Positions 2,524 through 51,038 of a DNA stretch of 64,000 nt are shown piece after piece; positions within the stretch are counted from its first letter, which is position 1, and the number at the start of each line of letters is the position of its first letter. The translations under genes were made by a program, and so were the position numbers. The stretch lies in sequence record KT895374.1, one strand, 5' to 3'. The notes beneath the pieces are model-generated. The model was not told the origin of the DNA and ran no database searches. It saw only the letters and a program-made list of their open reading frames with translations.

Positions 2524-3041
2524 CTTTATCTTTTGACTTAATTCTTGAGGCTATTAAAAAAGATGGTTTAAAAGAAAGATTTACAGACGAATTAATGGAT
2601 GGTGAAAAGATAGTCCAATTTGAGAATTTTAATATATCTGAAACGGGTTATGGATTTATTATTATTGTTTTTCACCATAAATTTAATGACAATATAATGG
2701 TAATAGATAATAATGTAAAAGAAAATTATAGAATTTTCTTAAGATTTAATAAGAAAAACTCTTCTAAAAGAATAATTGAAATAAAAACTTTTAAATATGA
2801 AAGTTTAAACCTAAAAAGTATTTTATATCTTATCAACAAAGCAACTAACTTAGATGATTTCCAATTAGAAAAATATAGAAAAATTAATAATAGCGAATTG
2901 ACAGATATTGGAATTAATTATAGGCTTAAAAATGGTAAGTTAACTGATAAAATGATAAAAGATACTCTTAGATATCAACATCATGAAAATATGAGAGTAG
3001 GTAACGAAGTTCTAGCAAAATTAAAAATATTAGCAGTATAG
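2505..3041 (+). CDS. Hypothetical protein, array A paralog
   Basis: 178 aa ORF, SD ggagga, ends NEVLAKLKILAV. Confidence 0.8.
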   Translation: MFEMENSLSFDLILEAIKKDGLKERFTDELMDGEKIVQFENFNISETGYGFIIIVFHHKFNDNIMVIDNNVKENYRIFLRFNKKNSSKRIIEIKTFKYESLNLKSILYLINKATNLDDFQLEKYRKINNSELTDIGINYRLKNGKLTDKMIKDTLRYQHHENMRVGNEVLAKLKILAV

Positions 3042-3052
3042 GAGATTTTCAA

Positions 3053-3580
3053 ATGATTAATTTTATAAAAGACGCTCTTAATGAAGAAGGTTATATTGAA
3101 AAATCTACTGCAATACAATCTAAATATCATCATATGGAAAAAGAAAATAGAGAATTAATATTAAAACAAGATGACGTTAGTTGTTGGATTATCTGTCAGG
3201 ATAGTGATTTAAGAGTAGAACTAATTCAAGATAAAGATGATAATTTTCATCTTGGTTTTTGGGATATAGAAGATAATATAAATGGTTATCATTATTATAA
3301 TAGAAATCTAGAAGATTTATTGTCAGTAATAAAAGAAATATTTAATAGTAGTTATTTACTTAAAAGCTATTGTAATAATCAAGATTTTAATAAAAATCAT
3401 GAGATATTTATTCATAAAAGATTGGAAGCAAAAATTAATAGGAATTTTCTAAATAATGAAAATGCAAAAGATTTATTAGATTATTATAATAATAGACAAT
3501 TCAATAAAAATCATAACCGAATAAGAGAAAATTTCTTCACTGAAGAGATATTGACAAAACTAAGATTACTAGTAATATAA
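3053..3580 (+). CDS. Hypothetical protein, array A paralog
   Basis: 175 aa ORF, SD ggaga, ends EEILTKLRLLVI; GYHYYN shared with next ORF. Confidence 0.8.
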   Translation: MINFIKDALNEEGYIEKSTAIQSKYHHMEKENRELILKQDDVSCWIICQDSDLRVELIQDKDDNFHLGFWDIEDNINGYHYYNRNLEDLLSVIKEIFNSSYLLKSYCNNQDFNKNHEIFIHKRLEAKINRNFLNNENAKDLLDYYNNRQFNKNHNRIRENFFTEEILTKLRLLVI

Positions 3581-12592: not shown

Positions 12593-12902
12593 TTAGAGAT
12601 TTCTTAAGAACTTATTAATATCTTTTTGAATATCAGATTCAATAAAAATAATAGCCGTACCTTCATCATTTTTAACTGAAACTGATTTATTATCTTCATT
12701 TAAAGTCATTTTATTAAAGTCTAAATCTAATTCATTAGCAGTGATTTTTAAATTCTTACTTTCTTCTTTAAGATAATTTACAATAGATTGTCTCTCAACT
12801 TCTTGAATAAATCCTTCAGTAAGAACTTTTTGGTTAAAATCGTGGTCAGCTGATTCTTTAATAATATCTTGCTGATAAGCATTAGAATGTGATGGAAAAA
12901 TT
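12593..12902 (-). CDS. Prohead protease exon 3 (missing from ORF track)
   Basis: Reads (V)IFPSHSNAYQQDIIKESADHDF...KFLRNL-stop; joining GT+A restores TYDWVIFPSH. Confidence 0.88.
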
Positions 12903-13173
12903 CATTATCTTCTATTAACTTCGCTACTAGTTAATACGTTCTTTATGAACTGCTTATAGTTATCCTATAAGATGAGACTATATCTTCATTCTTATAAAAG
13001 AATGCTCTCTGTTTCCAATACGCTTGTATTGTACTCTACTCACTTAATATTAAGTTTTCGATAGTCGTTGAACCTTCCTCTTTTAGAGGATTGGATGCTG
13101 ATTGTCTAATGCTTTAGATTATTACCATTTTAGGTACTAAAGCTTCTAAAGAGTTTCCAGCAATTAAGAGAGT

Positions 13174-14118
13174 TTATACTGAGCAATTATATTTCAATAC
13201 CTCTTTAATTTTAGAAATATGATCTTCTTTATAACTAATCCTGATAAGTTTTTTATCATTCTCTTTACAAAATTTATCTTTTAGTTTATCCCTCTTTAAC
13301 TGTTTTTCAAAATTTTCTTGACCGTATGTTGGTTTAAAATGTTGAACACCATCGTATTCTATTAATAGATCATAAGAGGGTAAATAAAAATCGAATAAGA
13401 GATGATTTATATTTTTTAGACTATTAAATTTGTATTCTTCTATATATGAGATATTATTATCTTTAAAAAATTCTCTTAAATCTCTAACAGCTTTAGAGTC
13501 CTTATATAAATTTTTACAGTTAGGACAACCCTGATTATGTTTTGATAACATATCGGTTATTCTCATGGTAAAATCAAAAATAGAATCATCTATACAATTA
13601 TGAGAAAAAACCCCATAAGAATGTCCACTCTTTTGAAATACTGAATGTATAGTATATTCTTTTTCAATTAATAATTTAACAGATTCAACTGTATAGGTAT
13701 TTTTACCATAACAATCTTTACAGCCCTTTTTATTTCTATATATCATATTATCAGCTGTTGGAAACCATGTCTTATTACATTTCTTACACAATATTTCTAT
13801 TTTATCTGACATTTTAGTAAATTTTCCAACAACCTCATAATCTTCAATATTCCATTTACTGTAGAATTTTTTAAGATAATCATTATGATCTAACCTTTTA
13901 TTAGATTTCTTGTTTATAATTTTATTTTTAATAGCTAATTCTGGACATTGCCTTAAACCATCTAAATATCTTGGTTTAGTTTTCCATAAATAACCATCTT
14001 TATGCTCAAGAATAATAAAAGTATTAGCATTCTCATATGAAGATACAAGTCTATAATCAGGATATAGTTTATTAAGTCTTTTAATGAAGTTTTCTTTTCT
14101 TAAATTAAGATCATTCAT
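13174..14118 (-). CDS. Intron-encoded putative homing endonuclease (Zn-ribbon repeats + Vsr/DUF559-like PD-(D/E)xK domain)
   Basis: CKKC, CKDC, CPNC motifs, FDFYLPSYDLLIEYDGVQH; own SD gaggtg and late promoter. Confidence 0.85.
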   Translation of the reverse strand: MNDLNLRKENFIKRLNKLYPDYRLVSSYENANTFIILEHKDGYLWKTKPRYLDGLRQCPELAIKNKIINKKSNKRLDHNDYLKKFYSKWNIEDYEVVGKFTKMSDKIEILCKKCNKTWFPTADNMIYRNKKGCKDCYGKNTYTVESVKLLIEKEYTIHSVFQKSGHSYGVFSHNCIDDSIFDFTMRITDMLSKHNQGCPNCKNLYKDSKAVRDLREFFKDNNISYIEEYKFNSLKNINHLLFDFYLPSYDLLIEYDGVQHFKPTYGQENFEKQLKRDKLKDKFCKENDKKLIRISYKEDHISKIKEVLKYNCSV

Positions 14119-14145
14119 CGTATTTACACCTCGACATTTAATTAT

Positions 14146-14157
14146 TAATTAAATGTT
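14146..14157 (-). promoter_or_regulatory. Intron-internal late promoter for the endonuclease
   Basis: aaca-tttaat-ta 28 nt upstream of ATG. Confidence 0.65.
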
Positions 14158-14220
14158 AAGTAAATTACATACGATTTCTAAAGATTAAAAAGGCATATTT
14201 GATAAGATAATTATTGACTT

Positions 14221-14486
14221 ACCCAGTCATAGGTGACGATATGGAGTGGTTTTTCAATTCTAGTAACCTTACCCACATCTCTTGTAATTCCTCCAAGACC
14301 ACGCATTGAGAAAGCTACTTCTGTGCCTTGTTTAATAACTCCTGCCATGTCTCTACCACATAAAGTGTTTGCAGTAGCCACATTACCCATCAATACATTT
14401 CCTTCCCACCATACATCTTTAATCACATGTGACATTCTAGTCTGATCAATATATGTTTGTCGTTCTAAATCATTTGAAAGTGGATG
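14221..14486 (-). CDS. Prohead protease exon 2
   Basis: HPLSNDLERQ...AFSMRGLGG...TYDW; catalytic His and Ser motifs of T4 gp21-type proteases (GExxHP, SSRGLG). Confidence 0.9.
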
Positions 14487-14705
14487 CAATTATATTCATA
14501 TGAATTCGCTACTATTCATATCGCCCATATCTTAATGGACTGCTTATGATCTCTCATAAGATTAGACTATATCAAAACCCTCATCTTAAATGTTAGGGTT
14601 CTCTCTGTTTCGGTTATCAATCACTTATAACCTACTCTACTGACTTATTCTTAAATAAGCTTTCGATAGTCGTTGAACTATAAAACGTATTGAAATAATG
14701 AATTA

Positions 14706-14717
14706 AATATATATTAT
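14706..14717 (+). promoter_or_regulatory. Early-type promoter inside intron 1, antisense to it
   Basis: Exact aatatatattat, 37 nt before ATG 14754. Confidence 0.65.
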
Positions 14718-14753
14718 AAAAAAGATTTAACTAAATGGAAGGATTGAACTTAT

Positions 14754-15125
14754 ATGAAAGTTAATATTAATTACAGAGAATTAATTATTAAAGATTTCTT
14801 TCATGAAATTGATGAGAAATTTATAACCAACCCTGATATCAGACTTCATCCAAAGGCAATTGAATTCTTTAAAGAATATTTTATTATTAGATATGAGAAT
14901 GAAATTAAAGCAGGGAACGGTCATGAAGATAGAATTAGTATGAGCTATGAAGTTTATGAGAGAAATATACGAGCACTTGGTATCTTCATAAACGAGATCT
15001 ATCTTCTTATGCATGAAAAGAATAATGAAAACTACAGGTTTAAAAAATCCATCAATTTCCTCATTCAAAATCTTCGACATTTTGTTAAAAGCGGTAAGAC
15101 TCATTATTATCGCAACGAAGAATAG
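14754..15125 (+). CDS. Hypothetical protein encoded antisense within intron 1
   Basis: 123 aa, SD ggaagga, early promoter; stop abuts the P6 5' strand. Confidence 0.7.
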   Translation: MKVNINYRELIIKDFFHEIDEKFITNPDIRLHPKAIEFFKEYFIIRYENEIKAGNGHEDRISMSYEVYERNIRALGIFINEIYLLMHEKNNENYRFKKSINFLIQNLRHFVKSGKTHYYRNEE

Positions 15126-15238
15126 CTGCTGATTGTCTAATACTTTAGATTGTTACCTCTTTGGGTACTAAAGTTTCTAAAGAGTTTCCAGCAATTAAGA
15201 GAGTTTAGACACATACTTTAATATGTGAATGGCAATCT

Positions 15239-15469
15239 ACCAGCTTCGCCGAACAGTGACTTCCGTTTCAATTTCTCTTGGAATCGGGAGTCATTTACGG
15301 CTTGCATTAAAGCATCCTTTGCGTAAACACGTTTGTTTCTATTTTCAGCTTCTGCTTCTTGTAAAACTGTTTTAATTACAATATCGTCTCTTTCATGTTC
15401 CATAATATGAGGACGCATTGGTTCTGTTGCTGATTCAATAATAAAATAACCCTTAGTATTGTTATCCAT
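15239..15469 (-). CDS. Prohead protease exon 1 (spliced CDS 15469-15239 + 14486-14221 + 12902-12593, 268 aa)
   Basis: LQEAEAENRNKRVY..LFGEAG matches gp21-like N-terminus (NRNxRxY, GExxH); SD ggag. Confidence 0.9.
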
Positions 15470-15497
15470 CTCATTACTCCTTTAATAAGAATATAAA

Positions 15498-15509
15498 TAA
15501 TTTAATGTT
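15498..15509 (-). promoter_or_regulatory. Late promoter for protease/neck genes
   Basis: aaca-ttaaat-ta. Confidence 0.7.
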
Positions 15510-15537
15510 TTAGAAACTCTTTATGAATTAAAAATAA

Positions 15538-16047
15538 TTGGATGTGATTAAAATTAAATTAGATGATGGTACACTTTCACACTTAATGGAATCTTTTAAA
15601 AATAACTCTAAGAATTTTGAGGAAGAATGTATAGATTTATTAATTGATGATCCTGATGGTTCATTACTATTAAACATCTTACTAAATTTTAAATTAAGTG
15701 ATGAATTCCTAAAATTGAATGTAAAAAATTATAGACATAATCATTGGATTTATTTATCAGTTTTTCAAAAACCTAGTATAGACTTTACTGTAAAATATTT
15801 TGAAGAGATGAATCGTGGAAATGTAGTAATAGGTAATAAAAATGTAAATATCGAAATTATATATAGGATGGCTGATACTTTTAATGAATCTCAATGGGAT
15901 TTAATTAGTGAAAGACTTTATTTACCTAAAGAATTTTTAATTAAGTATGCAAATAAAATTAATTGGAATACTATATATGAAAGAAAAGACGAATTAATAG
16001 GATTTGATGAAGAAGTAGAAGTAATATATAAAATGTATAAATTATAA
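15538..16047 (+). CDS. Degenerate Trp-repeat protein, array C
   Basis: HWIYLSVFQKPS, QWDLISERLYLPKEFL, INWNTI; ends EEVEVIYKMYKL; start codon uncertain. Confidence 0.7.
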   Translation: MDVIKIKLDDGTLSHLMESFKNNSKNFEEECIDLLIDDPDGSLLLNILLNFKLSDEFLKLNVKNYRHNHWIYLSVFQKPSIDFTVKYFEEMNRGNVVIGNKNVNIEIIYRMADTFNESQWDLISERLYLPKEFLIKYANKINWNTIYERKDELIGFDEEVEVIYKMYKL

Positions 16048-16065
16048 ATAAAAGGTTGTGCCATA

Positions 16066-16791
16066 ATGACAATAGAAGAGCAGGAACTAATAAAACTTAT
16101 AAACAAGGAACTTGAAAAAGATAGACCTGATGGAAATGAAATTAACCATTTAATAGTAGATTTTGATATAGAAAATAGAATAAGACTCTCTAATAATTTT
16201 CTTAAAAATTATGAGAATTATATTGATTGGAAAGTAATACTTATAGATTTTAATTTAGATGAGGAATTTCTAGAGAGGTATGAGGACAAAATAGACTGGA
16301 ATGATGTTGCGGTTTATCAAAAATTGTCAGAGTCATTTATTGAACGTTATCACAATAGATTGAACTGGGATGTAGTATCGGTTGAACAAGATCTGTCAGA
16401 AACATTTATAGAGGAATGGGAAGGAAATATTAATTGGTATGCAATAAGCATGTATCAGGAATTATCAAGAGAATTTATTGAAAAACACCAAGATAAATTA
16501 AATTGGCATAATATATCTTTAAATCAGAAATTGAGTGAAGATGATATAGTTCAATTTAAGGATTTAATTGAATGGGAAACTATATCTCACGCTCAAGATC
16601 TATCATTAGAATTTATTGAAGAGTACAAAGATATGTTAAATTGGGATTTTTTATCTCGACATCAATATTTATCAGAGACATTTATTTTAGAAAATAGAAG
16701 TAGAATTAATTGGAAAAAATTAAGAAGTAATAGTCAAATATTTTTTACAGAAAAATTAGAGACAGTATATAAACTAGTAGTAAATCTATAA
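16066..16791 (+). CDS. Tryptophan-repeat protein (tandem 22-aa repeats), array C
   Basis: About 8 copies of [IL][DN]WxxISxxQxLSExFIExYxDx; ends EKLETVYKLVVNL. Confidence 0.85.
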   Translation: MTIEEQELIKLINKELEKDRPDGNEINHLIVDFDIENRIRLSNNFLKNYENYIDWKVILIDFNLDEEFLERYEDKIDWNDVAVYQKLSESFIERYHNRLNWDVVSVEQDLSETFIEEWEGNINWYAISMYQELSREFIEKHQDKLNWHNISLNQKLSEDDIVQFKDLIEWETISHAQDLSLEFIEEYKDMLNWDFLSRHQYLSETFILENRSRINWKKLRSNSQIFFTEKLETVYKLVVNL

Positions 16792-16820
16792 ATATCTCTT
16801 AGAAAAAAGAGGGTTGATTC

Positions 16821-17525
16821 ATGAATAATTATGAAAAAGAATTTGAAAAATCTATCAAAAATAAACGTGACAATATTAACAGTGAAATAGTAGCTTTTAG
16901 TCATTTAAATAATGTCCGTTTATCGGATAAATTTTTTAGAAAATATGGAGATCGTATTCATTGGTCCACTGTAGTCATGTATTTTCAATTAAGTGAAGAT
17001 TTTATGACTATGTATGAAGATAAAATAAGCTGGTATTTAGTTGCCTTTTGTCAAAAAAATTTATCAGAAGAATTCATAAAAAAATATAAGGATAAGTTAA
17101 ATTGGGATTCTTTATGTTTGCATCAAAAATTATCTGAAGAGATGATAGAAAATAATATTGAAAAAATTAATTGGCGCAATATATCTGAAGGTCAAATCTT
17201 ATCAGAAGAGTTCATTGAAAAATATCAAGATAAGTTGAATTGGATTAATATAAGCATTAGTCAAACTTTATCAGAAGAGTTCATAATCAGGAATCTAAAT
17301 AAATTAAATCTCGCATATATATCTGAATGCCAAACTTTATCAGAAAGATTTATTGAAAAATATCAAGACCGATTAGATTGGGCATCTATTTCTGAGCATC
17401 AAAAATTATCAGAAAATTTTGTTATCAGGTATCTTGATAAAATTTATTGGAATCAATTGTTAAAAAATCATAAAGTAGAAATTACCAGCAAAATAATAAC
17501 TTCTAAACAACTACGCAATCTATGA
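16821..17525 (+). CDS. Tryptophan-repeat protein (tandem 22-aa repeats), array C
   Basis: About 8 repeats e.g. LNWDSLCLHQKLSEEMIENNIEK. Confidence 0.85.
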   Translation: MNNYEKEFEKSIKNKRDNINSEIVAFSHLNNVRLSDKFFRKYGDRIHWSTVVMYFQLSEDFMTMYEDKISWYLVAFCQKNLSEEFIKKYKDKLNWDSLCLHQKLSEEMIENNIEKINWRNISEGQILSEEFIEKYQDKLNWINISISQTLSEEFIIRNLNKLNLAYISECQTLSERFIEKYQDRLDWASISEHQKLSENFVIRYLDKIYWNQLLKNHKVEITSKIITSKQLRNL

Positions 17526-17592
17526 GGGGAAGTGATAAATTGATTGTATAGTTGCTTAATATTATCTACATAAAATTAGGGAGGAAGAAAAA

Positions 17593-18246
17593 ATGAATGA
17601 AGTAAATTTAGATCTATTAAGAAAAAGTATTTTAAATGATGATTTTAAAAATGCTTTAAAAATTGCAAAAGAGAATATTATTGATTATATTGGTTGTATG
17701 GTAAATTATTATAAAGGTAATATTAGTAGCGAAATATTATTTTGTAATGGAATTCTAGCTAATAGTACATTAAGAAATGATTATCTATATGAGAAATTTG
17801 GAAATAATGTAGAAATTACTAGCCATTTTATTAGAGGTAATAAAAGATTTAGAGACGCAATTATAAATAAATTAAATGAGGAAGGGATTAAAGCAAGGGA
17901 AGTAAAGATTAATGATGATTCATATGATTTATTAATTGATCTTTCTCCAGAATTCCTTAATAAGAAAGATAGAGAAAACCTTATCAATTTCTTAAATACT
18001 ACCACTACTAATTTAAAAGAAAAGAGCACTTACAAAGATAGCCCATACTTAAAAGAGACTAACTATGAAATCAGAAGTATTATTAAGGAATTAAAAAGAG
18101 AAAATAATGCTGATGTTTTCTTTTTAACCTTAGATATGAAAGGTAATATTTATACATTATTAGATCTTAACAGTGAATTAAATAACCCTATAAGACCATC
18201 AGACTTTAATATTGAACATATTATTAATAATCTTCGCTTTTATTAG
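17593..18246 (+). CDS. Hypothetical protein
   Basis: 217 aa ORF, SD gggagg. Confidence 0.7.
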   Translation: MNEVNLDLLRKSILNDDFKNALKIAKENIIDYIGCMVNYYKGNISSEILFCNGILANSTLRNDYLYEKFGNNVEITSHFIRGNKRFRDAIINKLNEEGIKAREVKINDDSYDLLIDLSPEFLNKKDRENLINFLNTTTTNLKEKSTYKDSPYLKETNYEIRSIIKELKRENNADVFFLTLDMKGNIYTLLDLNSELNNPIRPSDFNIEHIINNLRFY

Positions 18247-18253
18247 TGAAGAT

Positions 18254-18284
18254 AAAAAATCTCTTTAATAGAGATTTTTTTTTT
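18254..18284 (+). terminator. Intrinsic terminator
   Basis: aaaaaatctct-ttaat-agagatttttt plus T-tract. Confidence 0.75.
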
Positions 18285-18319
18285 CTATGATCCAAAGAGA
18301 AACAGAGCATAAAGCATTT

Positions 18320-29432: not shown

Positions 29433-31661
29433 TTAGAATCCTTGATCATCTAAACCTGAATCGGCTTGATCGTTATCCTTTGGTTCTTTTAAATTTTCTT
29501 CATTAATACCTGTAATAGTATTAGTATATAATTGGTCCATTTTATCCCAATCAATATTAGCAAGAATTTCTTTTGAGACATTTTTTCTAAAATCACGTTT
29601 GATTCTAGAATCAGTCTCATCTTCGGAAATATAATTTGATGTAATGAAGTCGATCATCTGACTAGCATTACTTATCTGATCATTAATGTTATTAATATTT
29701 AACGTTAATGGCGGTGGGAATGATACTGAAATATCATTTAAATCAATATAGTCTTCATTTTTAGATCTATTACTAACCAGCTCATTTTCTTCTTTAGTAT
29801 TATTGTTTACCATAAATTCATTATAATAAAGGATTCTTATTAGTTCAGAACAGCTTTCAGCAAATGTGTGTTGATCTGATACAATTTTTCTGACAAAGGT
29901 AGAATTTTGCATAGCTAAAGATCTAGAGAATTCTACTTCTTGAGAAGCATCTACAAAGTTTGCAGGAATTCCTGTACCTGAAATGGCACTCTTTAGTAGA
30001 AATTCAAGAAATTCTTTATCAACATCAGAATTAATACCACTTAAGACATCAAAATCGACCATCTTTTCTCCATCAAATAATGGGATAAATAAATCCTGAT
30101 TAGCTCCAATATTTCTAAAGATTGATGTCATACTTTTTAACATATCAGTTGGGAGTTCTTTAGATTTAAAATCTTTTACTACTTCCTGAATAGTTCCTTC
30201 AGTATCATTATCAATTCCTGTTTCTACATAAACAATTCTTTTTTCTCTACCTTTAGTAATTTTCTGCATTAATTCATTTATTAATGTAGCAATATAAAGT
30301 TTAGAATGGAATAAACTTCTACTTAGTCTTGATCGTCCATAAATATTGTCTTTCTCTGGTGTAAAATGAACAACTTCTTCAGGAGCGAGATAAGTTATTT
30401 TTACAGGTTTCTCGGTAATGTAACGGTCTTTAAGAAGCATATAAATATATTCTTTAAAATCTTTATTCTTAAGAACTACATTATTATCAATTTTCTTAGA
30501 TATTCCTTTTACAAATATATTTGCAATAACTTCTTCTCGATCTCTAAATTTGCTTTTTTCAATATCAACCCTTGCATCAAAAAAGTCATTAACAGGACCA
30601 ACATAAGCACCATTTGGATTGTCATCAGCACTGTCTTTCTCAATATAAATATAACCAAAGTTTACGCCATCTACTTCTAATTTAATAGTCTTATCAGGTT
30701 TTAAATTACGAATAATAGAGCCATTAATATTGAAATTAGTATATTTTGAGTCTTTTGATTCTAATTCATTTTTCTTAGCTCTTTTTCTATTTAATTGAGC
30801 CAATGTTTTATCATCAATATCTAATAAAGATCTTCTTGTATCTTCATCATATTTGACATTTTTATTAAGTATTTCAGTTGCTGATTTCTGAATATCTTTA
30901 TAAATTTCAAATTCTTTTGGACTATTTTGAGTCTTACTTTCTTTATTTTGAGCAATAATAGATTCAGTAATAAATTTTACATTCTCATCAATCTCAATAT
31001 CTTTTGATATTATTTCTTTATTGACAATTATATCTTCCTTTAACATCATTCTATTAAATTCTTTATCATATTGTAGAACTGCTACAAATTGGTCTCCATA
31101 AATCAATGATTCTAATAATCTTTCTTTAAATAGAGTATTCAATTTATATTTATTTTTTAATCGACCAATATTTTCTATAACATTTTCATTTTTATTTGAA
31201 ACTTCTAATGTCCCTTTATACATAACATTAACAGAATCTTTAGTTAAGTCATCTGGCGACATAATAGTGTCTCTATAAATATCAATACAGTCAGCAATCT
31301 GTGGGATATAAGAATAAATCTCGTAGTAATCATTATATCTTGAGAATCTATCTTTTTCAAATCCTAAGAGACGTCCTAAATTTTCTTTAGATACTAGATC
31401 TTCAATAATCTTTTTATTTTTAACTGGATTCGTATTCTTAGGTTTCTTTTTCTCATCTTCATCCATTATTCTAGTAATAAGGTCTACTGTACTAATCGGT
31501 GCAGTAGATCCATCTTTACTACCATTTAAGTTCTTTATAACATTTTGTACTTTAGCGGTATCTTTTTTCAATAAACTATCTGAATCAATACCGTAAATTT
31601 TCTCATCTATATCATTGCTAATTTTATCAATTTTGTCTTTATTGTCAGGCATTCTTTTCAC
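29433..31661 (-). CDS. Portal protein (gp20-like)
   Basis: IPQIADCIDIYRD, LIYGDQF, YGRSRLSRS..LYI, GREKRIVYV, ISGTGIPANF, pattern of gp20-like portals. Confidence 0.8.
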   Translation of the reverse strand: MKRMPDNKDKIDKISNDIDEKIYGIDSDSLLKKDTAKVQNVIKNLNGSKDGSTAPISTVDLITRIMDEDEKKKPKNTNPVKNKKIIEDLVSKENLGRLLGFEKDRFSRYNDYYEIYSYIPQIADCIDIYRDTIMSPDDLTKDSVNVMYKGTLEVSNKNENVIENIGRLKNKYKLNTLFKERLLESLIYGDQFVAVLQYDKEFNRMMLKEDIIVNKEIISKDIEIDENVKFITESIIAQNKESKTQNSPKEFEIYKDIQKSATEILNKNVKYDEDTRRSLLDIDDKTLAQLNRKRAKKNELESKDSKYTNFNINGSIIRNLKPDKTIKLEVDGVNFGYIYIEKDSADDNPNGAYVGPVNDFFDARVDIEKSKFRDREEVIANIFVKGISKKIDNNVVLKNKDFKEYIYMLLKDRYITEKPVKITYLAPEEVVHFTPEKDNIYGRSRLSRSLFHSKLYIATLINELMQKITKGREKRIVYVETGIDNDTEGTIQEVVKDFKSKELPTDMLKSMTSIFRNIGANQDLFIPLFDGEKMVDFDVLSGINSDVDKEFLEFLLKSAISGTGIPANFVDASQEVEFSRSLAMQNSTFVRKIVSDQHTFAESCSELIRILYYNEFMVNNNTKEENELVSNRSKNEDYIDLNDISVSFPPPLTLNINNINDQISNASQMIDFITSNYISEDETDSRIKRDFRKNVSKEILANIDWDKMDQLYTNTITGINEENLKEPKDNDQADSGLDDQGF

Positions 31662-33286: not shown

Positions 33287-33608
33287 CGTTTTCTTCATAC
33301 AGGTTCGCTAATCCTGTACCGACAATTGTATTGTCAGCTCTATGTTTCCATAGAGACGAGACTATATCTTCATCTTATAATTTTATATAAGATGTTTCCT
33401 TTTTCCAATAGGCTTCTATTGTACTCTACTTGCTTAATAATAAGCTTTTGATAGTCGTTGAACCTTCCCCTTATTAGAGGATTGGCTGCTGATTGTCCAA
33501 CCCTATTAATTTTTAACTATCACGCTCACCGTTACCAGTCACGTTGTAGTTTAATAGATTCTAAGGATATTCCAGCAATTAAAGAAATTTAAAGCCGACC
33601 ATTTGTCC
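33287..33608 (-). mobile_element. ORF-less group I intron in DNA polymerase
   Basis: P1 GCCGAU|...GUCGGC with U-G pair, P/Q/R/S elements, P9 hairpins, terminal G; in-frame join QDPAD|NNNEF; exact 3' site inferred. Confidence 0.88.
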
Positions 33609-48622: not shown

Positions 48623-50053
48623 ATGGAGGATATAGTGATAGAGCTGTTTCCATCTTATATAAAAATTAGTAATTATGATAGAAACGAAAAACTAGAAAAA
48701 GCATTATCTGTATTTGATAAAACCATTTTCCAATATGTATTTTCAGCTTTCCTTATTGACGAGGATAAAAAAGAAATTATCATTCCTGGAGGGTTAGATC
48801 TTGAATACTTAAAAAATTTATTTAATGACAAAGAAGTTATTAATAGGAAAGATCAAATAAATAAATATCAAAATGTTAAATTAAACATAAAGTATCCTCC
48901 AAGAAATGCAAAACAAGAAGAAGCTATTAACTTTTTAATTAATGAAAAAAACACTCAGAAGTTTTTAGTATTGCCTACTGGTGAAGGGAAAACTTACTGT
49001 GCTATTAATTATGTAGTTAATTCAAAAAAATTACCATTAGTTATTGTAGATAAAGAAAATATTTCCAATCAATGGAAAGAAAGTTTTCTTAAATTTACAG
49101 ATATAAAAGAAAACGAAATATATTTAATTAGTGGTAAAGAAAGTATAGATAATTTGATGGGAATGGGAAGAAGAGAATTATCTAAATACAAATGTTTTAT
49201 TGCTATTCATAAAACATTGACTAATCTAATTAATAAAGACATGAATAATTTCAGAGAGCTAATAACACACCTTAGAATTGGTAGTAAGCTTTATGATGAA
49301 GCACACAGTGATTTTAAAAATATTTTCTTGTTAGACTCATTATCGGAATGTGAAAGTGTTTATATTACCGCAACACCTAGCAGAAGTAATCATATTGAAA
49401 ATGCAGTCTATCAAAGAATGTTTAAAAATGTATCGTTCTTTATATATACTACTGAATCTACTAGTAACTATCATAATATAGTTATTGCCAAATACAATAC
49501 TAACCCTACAAAAAAAGAACAATACTCAATTAGAAATCGTTATGGTTTTGATGCAAATAAATGGAGTAAAAGATTGATTAAAGATGAAGATGTTTATAAT
49601 CAAACTTTTGAAAATATCAAAACCTTAATTAAAAAACTTAATCCAGATTTTAATAAGAAGACAGTAATTCTTATAAATACTATGGATGGAGTTAGCAGTT
49701 TATTAAAGGATTTAAAAGAAGATTTTCCTAATTTATCTTTTGGACGTTATGATTCAACTATTAAGAAGGAAGATAAATTAGAACAACTAAATCGAGATAT
49801 CATTGTAACTACGGAAAAGTCTTTGGGTAAAGCTATTGATGTACCTAATTTAGAATTGTGTATTAATCTAATTCCTTTTGGTTCTAATGTTATTGCCGAA
49901 CAGATGTTAGGAAGACTAAGAAGAATAGAAGGAAAAACACTAGTATTCGTAGATATGATCGATATTGGATTTGAATCCTGTTTACAACAATTAAAACGAA
50001 AAAAGAATATATATAATAAAAAAGCTAAGAATATTTATGAACTTAGTCTTTAA
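48623..50053 (+). CDS. SF2 helicase, UvsW-like
   Basis: Q-motif RNAKQEEA, LPTGEGKT, YDEAH, TATPSR, QMLGRLRR. Confidence 0.88.
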   Translation: MEDIVIELFPSYIKISNYDRNEKLEKALSVFDKTIFQYVFSAFLIDEDKKEIIIPGGLDLEYLKNLFNDKEVINRKDQINKYQNVKLNIKYPPRNAKQEEAINFLINEKNTQKFLVLPTGEGKTYCAINYVVNSKKLPLVIVDKENISNQWKESFLKFTDIKENEIYLISGKESIDNLMGMGRRELSKYKCFIAIHKTLTNLINKDMNNFRELITHLRIGSKLYDEAHSDFKNIFLLDSLSECESVYITATPSRSNHIENAVYQRMFKNVSFFIYTTESTSNYHNIVIAKYNTNPTKKEQYSIRNRYGFDANKWSKRLIKDEDVYNQTFENIKTLIKKLNPDFNKKTVILINTMDGVSSLLKDLKEDFPNLSFGRYDSTIKKEDKLEQLNRDIIVTTEKSLGKAIDVPNLELCINLIPFGSNVIAEQMLGRLRRIEGKTLVFVDMIDIGFESCLQQLKRKKNIYNKKAKNIYELSL

Positions 50054-50141: not shown

Positions 50142-51038
50142 ATGTTCTTTTCAAAATTTAGTACAGATGGTAAGATTTGTTCATTATTGGTGAAAAAATT
50201 CTTCAAGTCAAATGACGAATTAAAGGTGTGTGATTTTAGCGATATTAATGATAAAGTAAATGATTATCTAGATCATATTGAACAATATGACAACTATGAA
50301 AAAAATCTTTTTATTTTAGACATCCATGTTTCATTAGAAACTGCAAAGAGAATTGAAAAAATGAAAAATAGGTTTAAGAATCTATTATTAATTGATCACA
50401 TTCCAAATAATCATTATTACTTAAAAAAGTTTGATTGGACAAAATTGTCAAATAATAAAGTTAGTTCATCTAAAATACTATTTAGTTATTTAGATGAGAA
50501 AAATCTAATTGACGATTATAGTTATGAACATATTGTGGATGTAGTGGATGAAAATGAAAAATTAAATTGGTTGGATAATCAATCTGAAGAAATTAAATTT
50601 TTAAATGATTTAAATGTTACTCTTCCATCAAAAGAATTTATTAATCGATTAATGATGAATAGCAGTTTAAAACCAAGTAAGAAAGAAAAAAGTTTAATTG
50701 AATTAAGAAATAAGGAAATTGAAAATTCAATCAAAAGTATTAACCCTGTCATTAAAGGTAAAACTTGTTATATATTTGCATTTAAATATATTAATGAGAT
50801 TTCAAAGCATTTCTTTAACTCTAATAGTAATATTGAAATGGTAATTGCGGTAAATCCTATGAATCAAACTGTATCTTACAGAAGTAAAAATTCAAAAAAT
50901 GATGCATCTGAAGTTGCTAAAATGTATAATGGAAATGGAAATAGTTTAATTGCTGGAAGTAAAATTGAAAATAATATCATGGAAAGTTTATTTGAAACCA
51001 TTATGGGTGTTCATAATCTTAAGGATTACACTAATTAA
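50142..51038 (+). CDS. DHH/DHHA1-like phosphoesterase, catalytically degenerate
   Basis: STDG, ILDI, IDHI (for DHH), SYRS..DASEVAKMYNGNGNSLIAG (for GGGHxxAAG). Confidence 0.7.
   Translation: MFFSKFSTDGKICSLLVKKFFKSNDELKVCDFSDINDKVNDYLDHIEQYDNYEKNLFILDIHVSLETAKRIEKMKNRFKNLLLIDHIPNNHYYLKKFDWTKLSNNKVSSSKILFSYLDEKNLIDDYSYEHIVDVVDENEKLNWLDNQSEEIKFLNDLNVTLPSKEFINRLMMNSSLKPSKKEKSLIELRNKEIENSIKSINPVIKGKTCYIFAFKYINEISKHFFNSNSNIEMVIAVNPMNQTVSYRSKNSKNDASEVAKMYNGNGNSLIAGSKIENNIMESLFETIMGVHNLKDYTN

Follow-up and report, generated by a model that had tools for sequence, protein, structure and literature searches.

The prohead core protease gene of Bacillus phage vB_BpuM-BpSp (BpSp), a jumbo phage with uracil-containing DNA that belongs to the AR9/PBS1 group, raises the question of why a group I intron in a late gene should hold, on the strand opposite to its own, what reads as a small early gene. 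The gene lies in the window analyzed here, a stretch of 64,000 nucleotides (nt) of sequence record KT895374.1, in which window positions equal record positions minus 124000. The cargo of phage group I introns is usually taken to be sense-strand homing endonucleases. A first-pass annotation of the window had proposed that the intron is a neutral harbour for an early gene, that antisense RNA controls the timing of protease expression by blocking it when premature, or both. The analysis indicates that the 440-nt insert, which encodes the protein gp190, is probably an autonomous early transcription unit that lies in loop L6, antisense to a predicted self-splicing group I intron that interrupts the late gene for the prohead protease.

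The protease gene was found to be split on the minus strand into three exons by two group I introns. Exon 1 (15239..15469, annotated as gp191 and ending in ...GEAG) was identified from a partial match to Pfam Peptidase_S77, exon 2 (14221..14486, annotated as gp189, HPLS...DWV) from Pfam and the alignment of the spliced open reading frame (ORF), and exon 3 (12593..12902, part of which is annotated as gp187) from the spliced-ORF alignment. Intron 1 spans 752 nt (14487..15238), and intron 2 is its 1318-nt paralogue (12903..14220), with a core that scores 61.6 bits against Rfam Intron_gpI. The joined exons encode 268 amino acids (aa). Compared over 265 residues, the product shares 60% identity with the protease encoded by the spliced AR9 gene; identity to the protease of Listeria phage LPJP1, whose gene is uninterrupted, is 37%, and the junctions GEAG|HPL and DWV|IFPSH are gap-free in the alignment with both. 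The AR9 protease is annotated with one intron, at the site of BpSp intron 1. A late-promoter motif of the AR9 consensus, AACA-N6-TA, was found by motif scan upstream of the BpSp start codon (15498..15509, minus strand). In the GenBank record the exons are entered as the separate genes gp187, gp189, and gp191, two of them as hypothetical proteins, and no intron is annotated anywhere in the genome; the annotation is corrected here, all three being exons of one protease gene.

Several features identify intron 1 as a member of group I. Its removal restores a continuous, conserved protease ORF, a U precedes the 5' splice site, and the last intron base is G. It aligns with a 345-nt AR9 intron that interrupts the same codon and scores 66 bits against Intron_gpI (RF00028). 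Rfam returned no intron match for the whole window or for the 2.7 kilobases (kb) at 13000-15700, because the L6 insert of intron 1 and the ORF of intron 2 defeat the model in large searches. The two halves of intron 1 matched only Intron_gpI, on the minus strand, with 25.5 bits (E 8e-5) and 17.4 bits (E 0.014) against a gathering score of 50 bits, and the break between them falls within P6. Exact matches to all four core motifs were present, including the Q element (3' strand of P4), GACAATCAGCAG at 15126..15137, and the R element (5' strand of P7), GTTCAACGACTATC at 14665..14678, both on the minus strand and both placed by the Rfam alignment as well. The strands of P3/P4, Q, R, and P7 were conserved in an alignment of intron 1, the AR9 intron, and intron 2, while minimum-free-energy folding of the whole of intron 1 was uninformative (z = -1.0). 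By these comparisons, intron 1 is a real group I intron, and self-splicing is predicted.

Between Q and R, P6 (in Rfam naming) is a stem of four base pairs (bp), CUAU (15125..15122) with AUAG (14681..14678). Comparison with AR9 and intron 2 delimited the 440-nt insert within it (14682..15121): a hairpin of about 40 nt occupies the same P6 position in AR9 and one of about 22 nt in BpSp intron 2, whereas intron 1 carries 440 extra bases. Pairing of the insert ends continues beyond the 4-bp stem, with a duplex of -10.6 kcal/mol that was equalled by nine of 500 shuffles. Since the insert ends pair and thereby close P6, the ribozyme core is predicted to be intact.

Read on the plus strand, the insert begins with an upstream promoter element, CGTATTGAAA (14686..14695), of the recurrent form cGTATyrAA. 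It is followed by the core of an early promoter of the virion RNA polymerase, AAATATATATTAT (14705-14717), an exact match to the AR9 consensus, and, after six bases, by a predicted start at G 14724 (14705..14724 in all). A Shine-Dalgarno (SD) sequence, GGAAGGA (14737..14743), precedes by 10 nt the ATG of gp190 (14754..15125), an ORF of 123 aa that is antisense to the intron and has its stop codon (15123-15125) in the P6 stem. Most of this arrangement had been described correctly in the first-pass annotation, including Q, R, the closing stem around some 440 nt, the SD, and the 123-aa antisense ORF; its exact early promoter also stands, at 14705 rather than at 14706.

The AR9 early consensus derives from differential RNA sequencing, and early transcription in that phage is independent of protein synthesis (PMC5312081). 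Eight matches to AR9-type promoters with at most one mismatch, five of them exact, were found in the window, against 0.82 expected. Genome-wide there are 19 exact copies, each upstream of an ORF on the same strand; the predicted start of the gp190 copy lies 30 nt before the ATG, and the other 18 lie 13-120 nt before their ORFs. The cGTATyrAA element occurs at a fixed distance, about 10 nt upstream of the core, in eight of 32 BpSp early-type promoters. Other promoters with the element include those at record positions 30787, 61673, 179964, and 246499, and an AR9 early promoter (locus L002, about 194-225) carries the same element. In a sigma-A scan, the upstream element of gp190 together with TATTAT could also be read as a -35/-10 pair (TTGAAA-16-TATTAT, 10/12).

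The ORF itself appears to be coding. One as long arose in only one of 5000 dinucleotide-preserving shuffles of the insert, and the codon score was positive in the gp190 frame only (+0.23 per codon). A 107-aa ORF on the minus strand of the insert was considered as the relic of a sense-strand endonuclease and was rejected; it matched no family, and its codon score was -0.11 over its own codons, with -0.20 for its frame over the whole ORF region. Searches with gp190 as a single sequence recovered only gp190, whether by tblastn against phages, by a word-indexed search of 5.8 billion proteins, or by full phmmer against 1.84 billion representatives. No match was found in Pfam, PHROGs, or NCBIfam or by sequence search of the PDB.

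Relatives were recovered from the layout of the DNA. A scan of IMG/VR with the pattern 'R complement, 5-35 bases, ATATATTAT' gave 30 matches, most of which were chance occurrences in short AT-rich L6 hairpins. Four loci, however, contained antisense L6 ORFs of 114-118 aa that resembled gp190 (BLASTP E 1e-8 to 1e-4); they had been missed by the database-wide protein searches because their scores were too low for the E-value limits. A profile built from three metagenomic members, without gp190, matched gp190 with E 1.3e-7 and matched nothing else among 2178 BpSp ORF fragments. Searched against the 5.8 billion proteins, a profile of the family yielded nine clusters in total, of 111-145 aa, all unnamed and all metagenomic except gp190, located in uncultivated AR9-like jumbo phages and in BpSp. 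The nine positions that are invariant in the family are all retained in gp190. Among unsaturated family pairs, the ratio of nonsynonymous to synonymous substitution rates (dN/dS) was 0.17-0.23, indicating purifying selection and therefore that the family members are real genes. The evidence for family membership is a modest similarity, backed by a shared architecture. When loci were searched with the family alignment and confirmed by gp190 alone, one locus was confirmed, and a search of IMG/VR for BpSp relatives through the neighbouring virion gene found none.

The family also made a usable structural model possible. The single-sequence AlphaFold2 model of gp190 was poor, with a predicted local distance difference test (pLDDT) score of 59, and Foldseek found nothing with it beyond the self-match in BFVD. 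With an alignment of nine sequences, the pLDDT rose to 83, with a predicted template modelling (pTM) score of 0.78, and the model was a bundle of five helices without a strand. No significant neighbour of this model was found by Foldseek in the PDB (best E about 1, template modelling score at most 0.41), none of the nine family members matched Pfam, and the beta-sheet catalytic core of nuclease folds was absent from the model. Neither homing-endonuclease profiles nor the LAGLIDADG, GIY-YIG, HNH, and PD-(D/E)xK signatures were recognized in gp190, and the His-Cys and EDxHD families of homing endonucleases gave no match either. By every test run, on sequence and on the predicted structure, gp190 is not a canonical homing nuclease. 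The motif reading of the first-pass annotation was thereby borne out, and its check for an endonuclease fragment revealed none that is recognizable; the protein instead joins an unnamed family that is predicted to be all-helical.

The genomic context could be read for six members, gp190 and five relatives, and the architecture recurs at the metagenomic loci L017, L028/L040, L039, L046, L049, and L050; two members had no readable DNA. In all readable members the gene is antisense, in L6 of a related group I intron, with its promoter on the R side. The order in the relatives is R complement, P6 arm, early-type promoter, SD, ORF, a hairpin with a run of T residues, P6 arm, and Q complement; the promoter of L049 is the exact early consensus, and the T-runs of the relatives are T7-T9. 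Five host-gene sites were distinguished. Two are in the gene of the virion RNA polymerase beta subunit, one occupied in L046 and the other in L017 and L039; a third is in a B-family DNA polymerase gene, split at motif A (L028), a fourth in an RNA polymerase beta' gene (L049), and the fifth is the BpSp protease. The protease gene of relatives is a known intron site, where the cargo is a sense-strand LAGLIDADG gene or none. At L050 (367-1031), two consecutive ORFs, the 145-aa family member and one of 76 aa, precede the terminator. At another IMG/VR contig, L025, an unrelated 137-aa antisense ORF (2815-3225, minus strand) comes after the R complement, the Q complement lying at a distance of about 1.3 kb, and may be another kind of antisense L6 cargo.

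No family member was found outside intron L6 in any readable context, and copies at three different host-gene sites are 77-80% identical. The latter observation points to recent spread of intron and cassette together, or to exchange between intron copies. As far as these comparisons reach, the cassette is a conserved, intron-linked early gene rather than a chance passenger. The neutral harbour of the first-pass annotation was therefore right about an antisense early cargo and understated its nature, as the cargo belongs to a conserved family that has been seen only in L6, in this orientation, at five host-gene sites.

These distributions bear on a further possibility, that the family represents a new type of protein for homing or mobility, acting as a nuclease of non-canonical type or as a cofactor that targets another nuclease. 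Such a protein would be produced early and would carry introns with the cassette into alleles that lack an intron and into new sites. L6 is the classical site of homing-endonuclease genes and the exclusive location of the family, and the near-identical copies at three gene sites would be explained by such an activity. In four of the six relatives' loci no other ORF is present in the intron; L050 has the second small ORF, and a NUMOD4-like gene lies nearby in L046. Precedents can also be cited, since the AR9 intron endonuclease g190 is likewise expressed from an early promoter (PMC5312081) and antisense homing-endonuclease genes occur in nuclear ribosomal DNA (rDNA) introns (PMC9548176). However, no nuclease family was matched, the confident model is all-helical with neither a beta-sheet core nor a structural neighbour, the proteins are small, and spread could be provided in trans by the many recognizable endonucleases of these phages. 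We regard a mobility protein of this kind as rather unlikely.

Further cassettes of the same design were found within BpSp itself. A scan of the rest of the genome for intron-core motifs revealed two more L6 inserts of about 450 nt, in minus-strand introns of the virion RNA polymerase beta gene, whose exons were mapped against AR9 g189 (locus L013, 1671-3289 and 4733-5465; record 189671-191289 and 192733-193465). They encode gp247 (112 aa) and gp249 (106 aa), and both consist of an R complement, an early-like promoter, an SD, a small antisense ORF, a terminator (hairpin and T9-T11), and a Q complement, with the insert ends paired. The positions of the two introns are those where metagenomic relatives carry genes of the gp190 family. 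Homology of gp247 or gp249 to gp190 was considered and not detected in pairwise and profile tests: gp247 gave no match to the family, and gp249 was marginal (hhalign E 0.017 over 15 residues, with a probability of 2.7%, and hmmsearch E 0.19). The first of these introns also holds gp246 (306 aa), which is antisense in another loop and has no recognizable promoter; in AR9 the homologous gene stands free, with an annotated early promoter of its own, which shows that ordinary early genes can live in these introns.

The sibling cassettes lend weight to a second alternative, that gp190 is an early passenger gene unrelated to the intron, for example for host takeover or anti-defence, with the intron as a neutral site, as in the neutral harbour of the first-pass annotation, and the recurrence of the cassette a result of co-inheritance with a proliferating intron lineage. 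The free-standing homologue of gp246 and the lack of detectable relationship between gp190 and the proteins of the sibling cassettes are both as expected of such a gene. The restriction of the family to L6 and the conservation of the whole unit, flanking P6 arms included, are not, and the passenger reading is accordingly judged somewhat unlikely.

The sense-strand intron ORFs of BpSp that were checked are endonuclease-like, while the antisense ones are not. Both gp149 and gp188 match phrog_559, and gp156 is of the LAGLIDADG type, so that the earlier statement that intron ORFs are normally sense-strand nucleases holds for these three. The 314-aa gp188 (13174-14118, minus strand; phrog_559 E 6e-56, DUF559, zinc finger) lies near the 5' end of intron 2, and a motif scan placed a late-promoter motif, AACATTTAATTA (14157..14146, minus strand), inside that intron 27 nt before its ATG. 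An ORF-less intron of the same lineage was observed at about 33368-33582 (minus strand). It separates gp207 from gp206, each of which bears the annotation B-family DNA polymerase, and in metagenomic relatives a gp190-family cassette is carried by an intron of this gene. Matches to the P3/P4 motif with two mismatches in gp221 (49980-49994, minus strand) and gp222 (50946-50960, plus strand) had no other core motifs nearby and are probably due to chance.

The distal end of the gp190 cassette differs from that of its relatives. Where relatives and sibling cassettes have a TTAAAAG-like sequence, a hairpin, and a T-run, BpSp has TTAAAAG followed, within the last gp190 codons, by a hairpin with a 7-bp stem (15091..15113, plus strand) and no T-run. 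The hairpin is probably a decayed terminator. The absence of an evident terminator downstream had been noted in the first-pass annotation, and neither a scan nor direct reading found one between the gp190 stop (15125) and the protease start region. The next plus-strand candidates are a weak one at 16913, from the scanner, and a hairpin with T10 at 18258..18285, which is by direct reading the first intrinsic terminator on the plus strand, beyond the promoter in the intron, that is clear. Before it lie gp192-gp195 (15538..18246, plus strand), comprising three Trp-repeat family genes, with matches to phrog_3532, and one other gene. Scans detected no early or late consensus promoter for gp192-195, nor any between them and the intron early promoter; the late motif is present for the protease, the intron 2 endonuclease gene, and gp196, and other Trp-repeat clusters of BpSp stand behind early-like promoters. 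The first gene of the group, gp192 (15538-16047), matches only positions 85-260 of the 292-position phrog_3532 profile, and a convincing SD or start codon is missing, so that it looks like a 5'-truncated Trp-repeat gene beside the protease promoter region.

From this arrangement, it is plausible that an early RNA starting at 14724 extends into gp192-195, crossing in antisense the 5' half of the ribozyme, exon 1, and the start region of the protease, since these genes have no promoters of their own and the next clear terminator is at 18258-18285. If it occurs, such read-through would be peculiar to BpSp. A third alternative makes the antisense RNA the main product and the ORF secondary; by pairing with L6, the 5' half of the ribozyme, exon 1, and the ribosome-binding site in the pre-mRNA of the protease, the RNA would delay or tune splicing and translation. 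The open path from the gp190 stop to the protease start region fits this, and AR9 early transcripts persist to late times (PMC5312081), so that sense and antisense RNAs could coexist. On the other hand, all five relatives that could be read and both BpSp siblings terminate inside L6, before the core, and thus read-through appears to be a derived state of BpSp and antisense control not a conserved design. The ORF is also under purifying selection in the family, and AR9 has the same intron without an insert. Antisense timing control, which the first-pass annotation had offered as a purpose of the cassette, is hence improbable; the premature protease expression that it was to block is not an evident problem either, as the protease already has its own late-type promoter.

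The autonomous early transcription unit can be outlined as follows. Transcription of the cassette by the injected virion polymerase would begin within minutes of infection and would not depend on the late host gene, while the antisense placement would keep ribosomes off the ribozyme RNA and splicing would remove the insert from the protease mRNA. The cassette presumably travels with the intron, as the family is tied to the L6 niche and near-identical copies occur in different introns. The protein itself probably benefits the intron or the phage at an early stage of infection, for instance by aiding mobility or by taking part in competition among co-infecting genomes; an early promoter would put it in the cell before replication, which fits such a role. 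With its terminator lost, the BpSp unit probably also sends early RNA across the ribozyme 5' half and exon 1, and may express gp192-195.

A number of observations weigh against this outline. The family is small, with nine clusters; BpSp is its only carrier among cultured phages, and gp190 is the most divergent member (18-28% identity). Its codon score lies below the gene average of 0.46, and among the readable members BpSp alone lacks a terminator between the ORF and Q, so that gp190 could be decaying. In AR9, a single base change in the early consensus abolished a predicted promoter (PMC5312081), and for this reason the activity of the gp190 promoter, although an exact copy, cannot be assumed from its letters. 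Early expression, translation of gp190, and splicing in BpSp are likewise predictions from sequence. The link between the protein and intron biology derives from co-location, which could reflect co-inheritance with a proliferating intron lineage.

Taken to its limit, decay would mean that the BpSp ORF is a relic and that only the promoter matters, by driving gp192-195, or that nothing does. The divergence, the low codon score, and the lost terminator would all follow, and gp192 is without the N-terminal 84 or so positions of its family profile and without an SD or promoter. A relic is nevertheless very improbable, given that the ORF is intact with every family-invariant position kept, that its SD is intact, and that its length is so rarely reached in shuffles. 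A more far-reaching version of the autonomous unit may also be formulated, in which the gp190 family is a new intron-resident class, a helical non-nuclease encoded in an antisense cassette read by the virion polymerase, that helps its intron to spread or to be retained, or gives the intron-bearing phage an advantage when infections are mixed. In this version, the loss of the BpSp terminator would have turned the intron promoter into that of a 3.6-kb early operon (gp190 and gp192-195), whose RNA, antisense through exon 1 and the protease ribosome-binding site, would link early transcription to protease output. As a whole, this extended proposal is unlikely.

What appears to be new at this locus is a conserved family under selection, predicted to be non-nuclease, with its own promoter and terminator, encoded on the opposite strand, and known only from a single loop in a single intron lineage. 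Should the protein target the intron or competing genomes, it would be a new type of partner in the relationship between introns and endonucleases; if it does not, these introns would be vehicles that move ordinary early genes between essential genes. As BpSp is the only cultured carrier of a member, direct testing is possible in this phage.

Three known systems resemble the cassette in part. In the T4 group I introns of td, nrdB, and nrdD, endonuclease ORFs lie in peripheral loops and have their own promoters (PMC2988022). As in BpSp, the ORF occupies an L6-type peripheral loop that leaves the core undisturbed, and an intron-internal promoter gives the cargo a timing different from that of the host gene. 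Unlike the BpSp ORF, those of T4 are sense-strand genes for GIY-YIG or HNH nucleases, and the timing is reversed, with late or middle promoters in early genes as opposed to an early promoter in a late gene. A further parallel is AR9 g190, which encodes an HNH-AP2 endonuclease and has an early promoter of its own within an intron of the late gene g189 (PMC5312081). It shares the phage group, the intron family, and the promoter class with the BpSp cassette, and in both cases an early gene is nested in the intron of a late virion-protein gene. However, AR9 g190 is a sense-strand gene for a recognizable homing endonuclease, and no insert is present in the AR9 protease intron that corresponds to BpSp intron 1.

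The antisense orientation is matched by His-Cys box homing-endonuclease genes in nuclear rDNA group I introns (PMC9548176), where a protein gene likewise lies opposite to the intron strand and is independently transcribed, as is predicted for BpSp. In a literature search of limited coverage, no antisense non-endonuclease cassette with its own promoter and terminator was found in a phage group I intron. The nuclear rDNA cases are eukaryotic, transcribed by RNA polymerase II, processed by the spliceosome, and nuclease-encoding; in contrast, cassettes of the BpSp type belong to phages, carry a promoter of the virion RNA polymerase and, in the relatives, a bacterial-type terminator, and encode a predicted helical non-nuclease.

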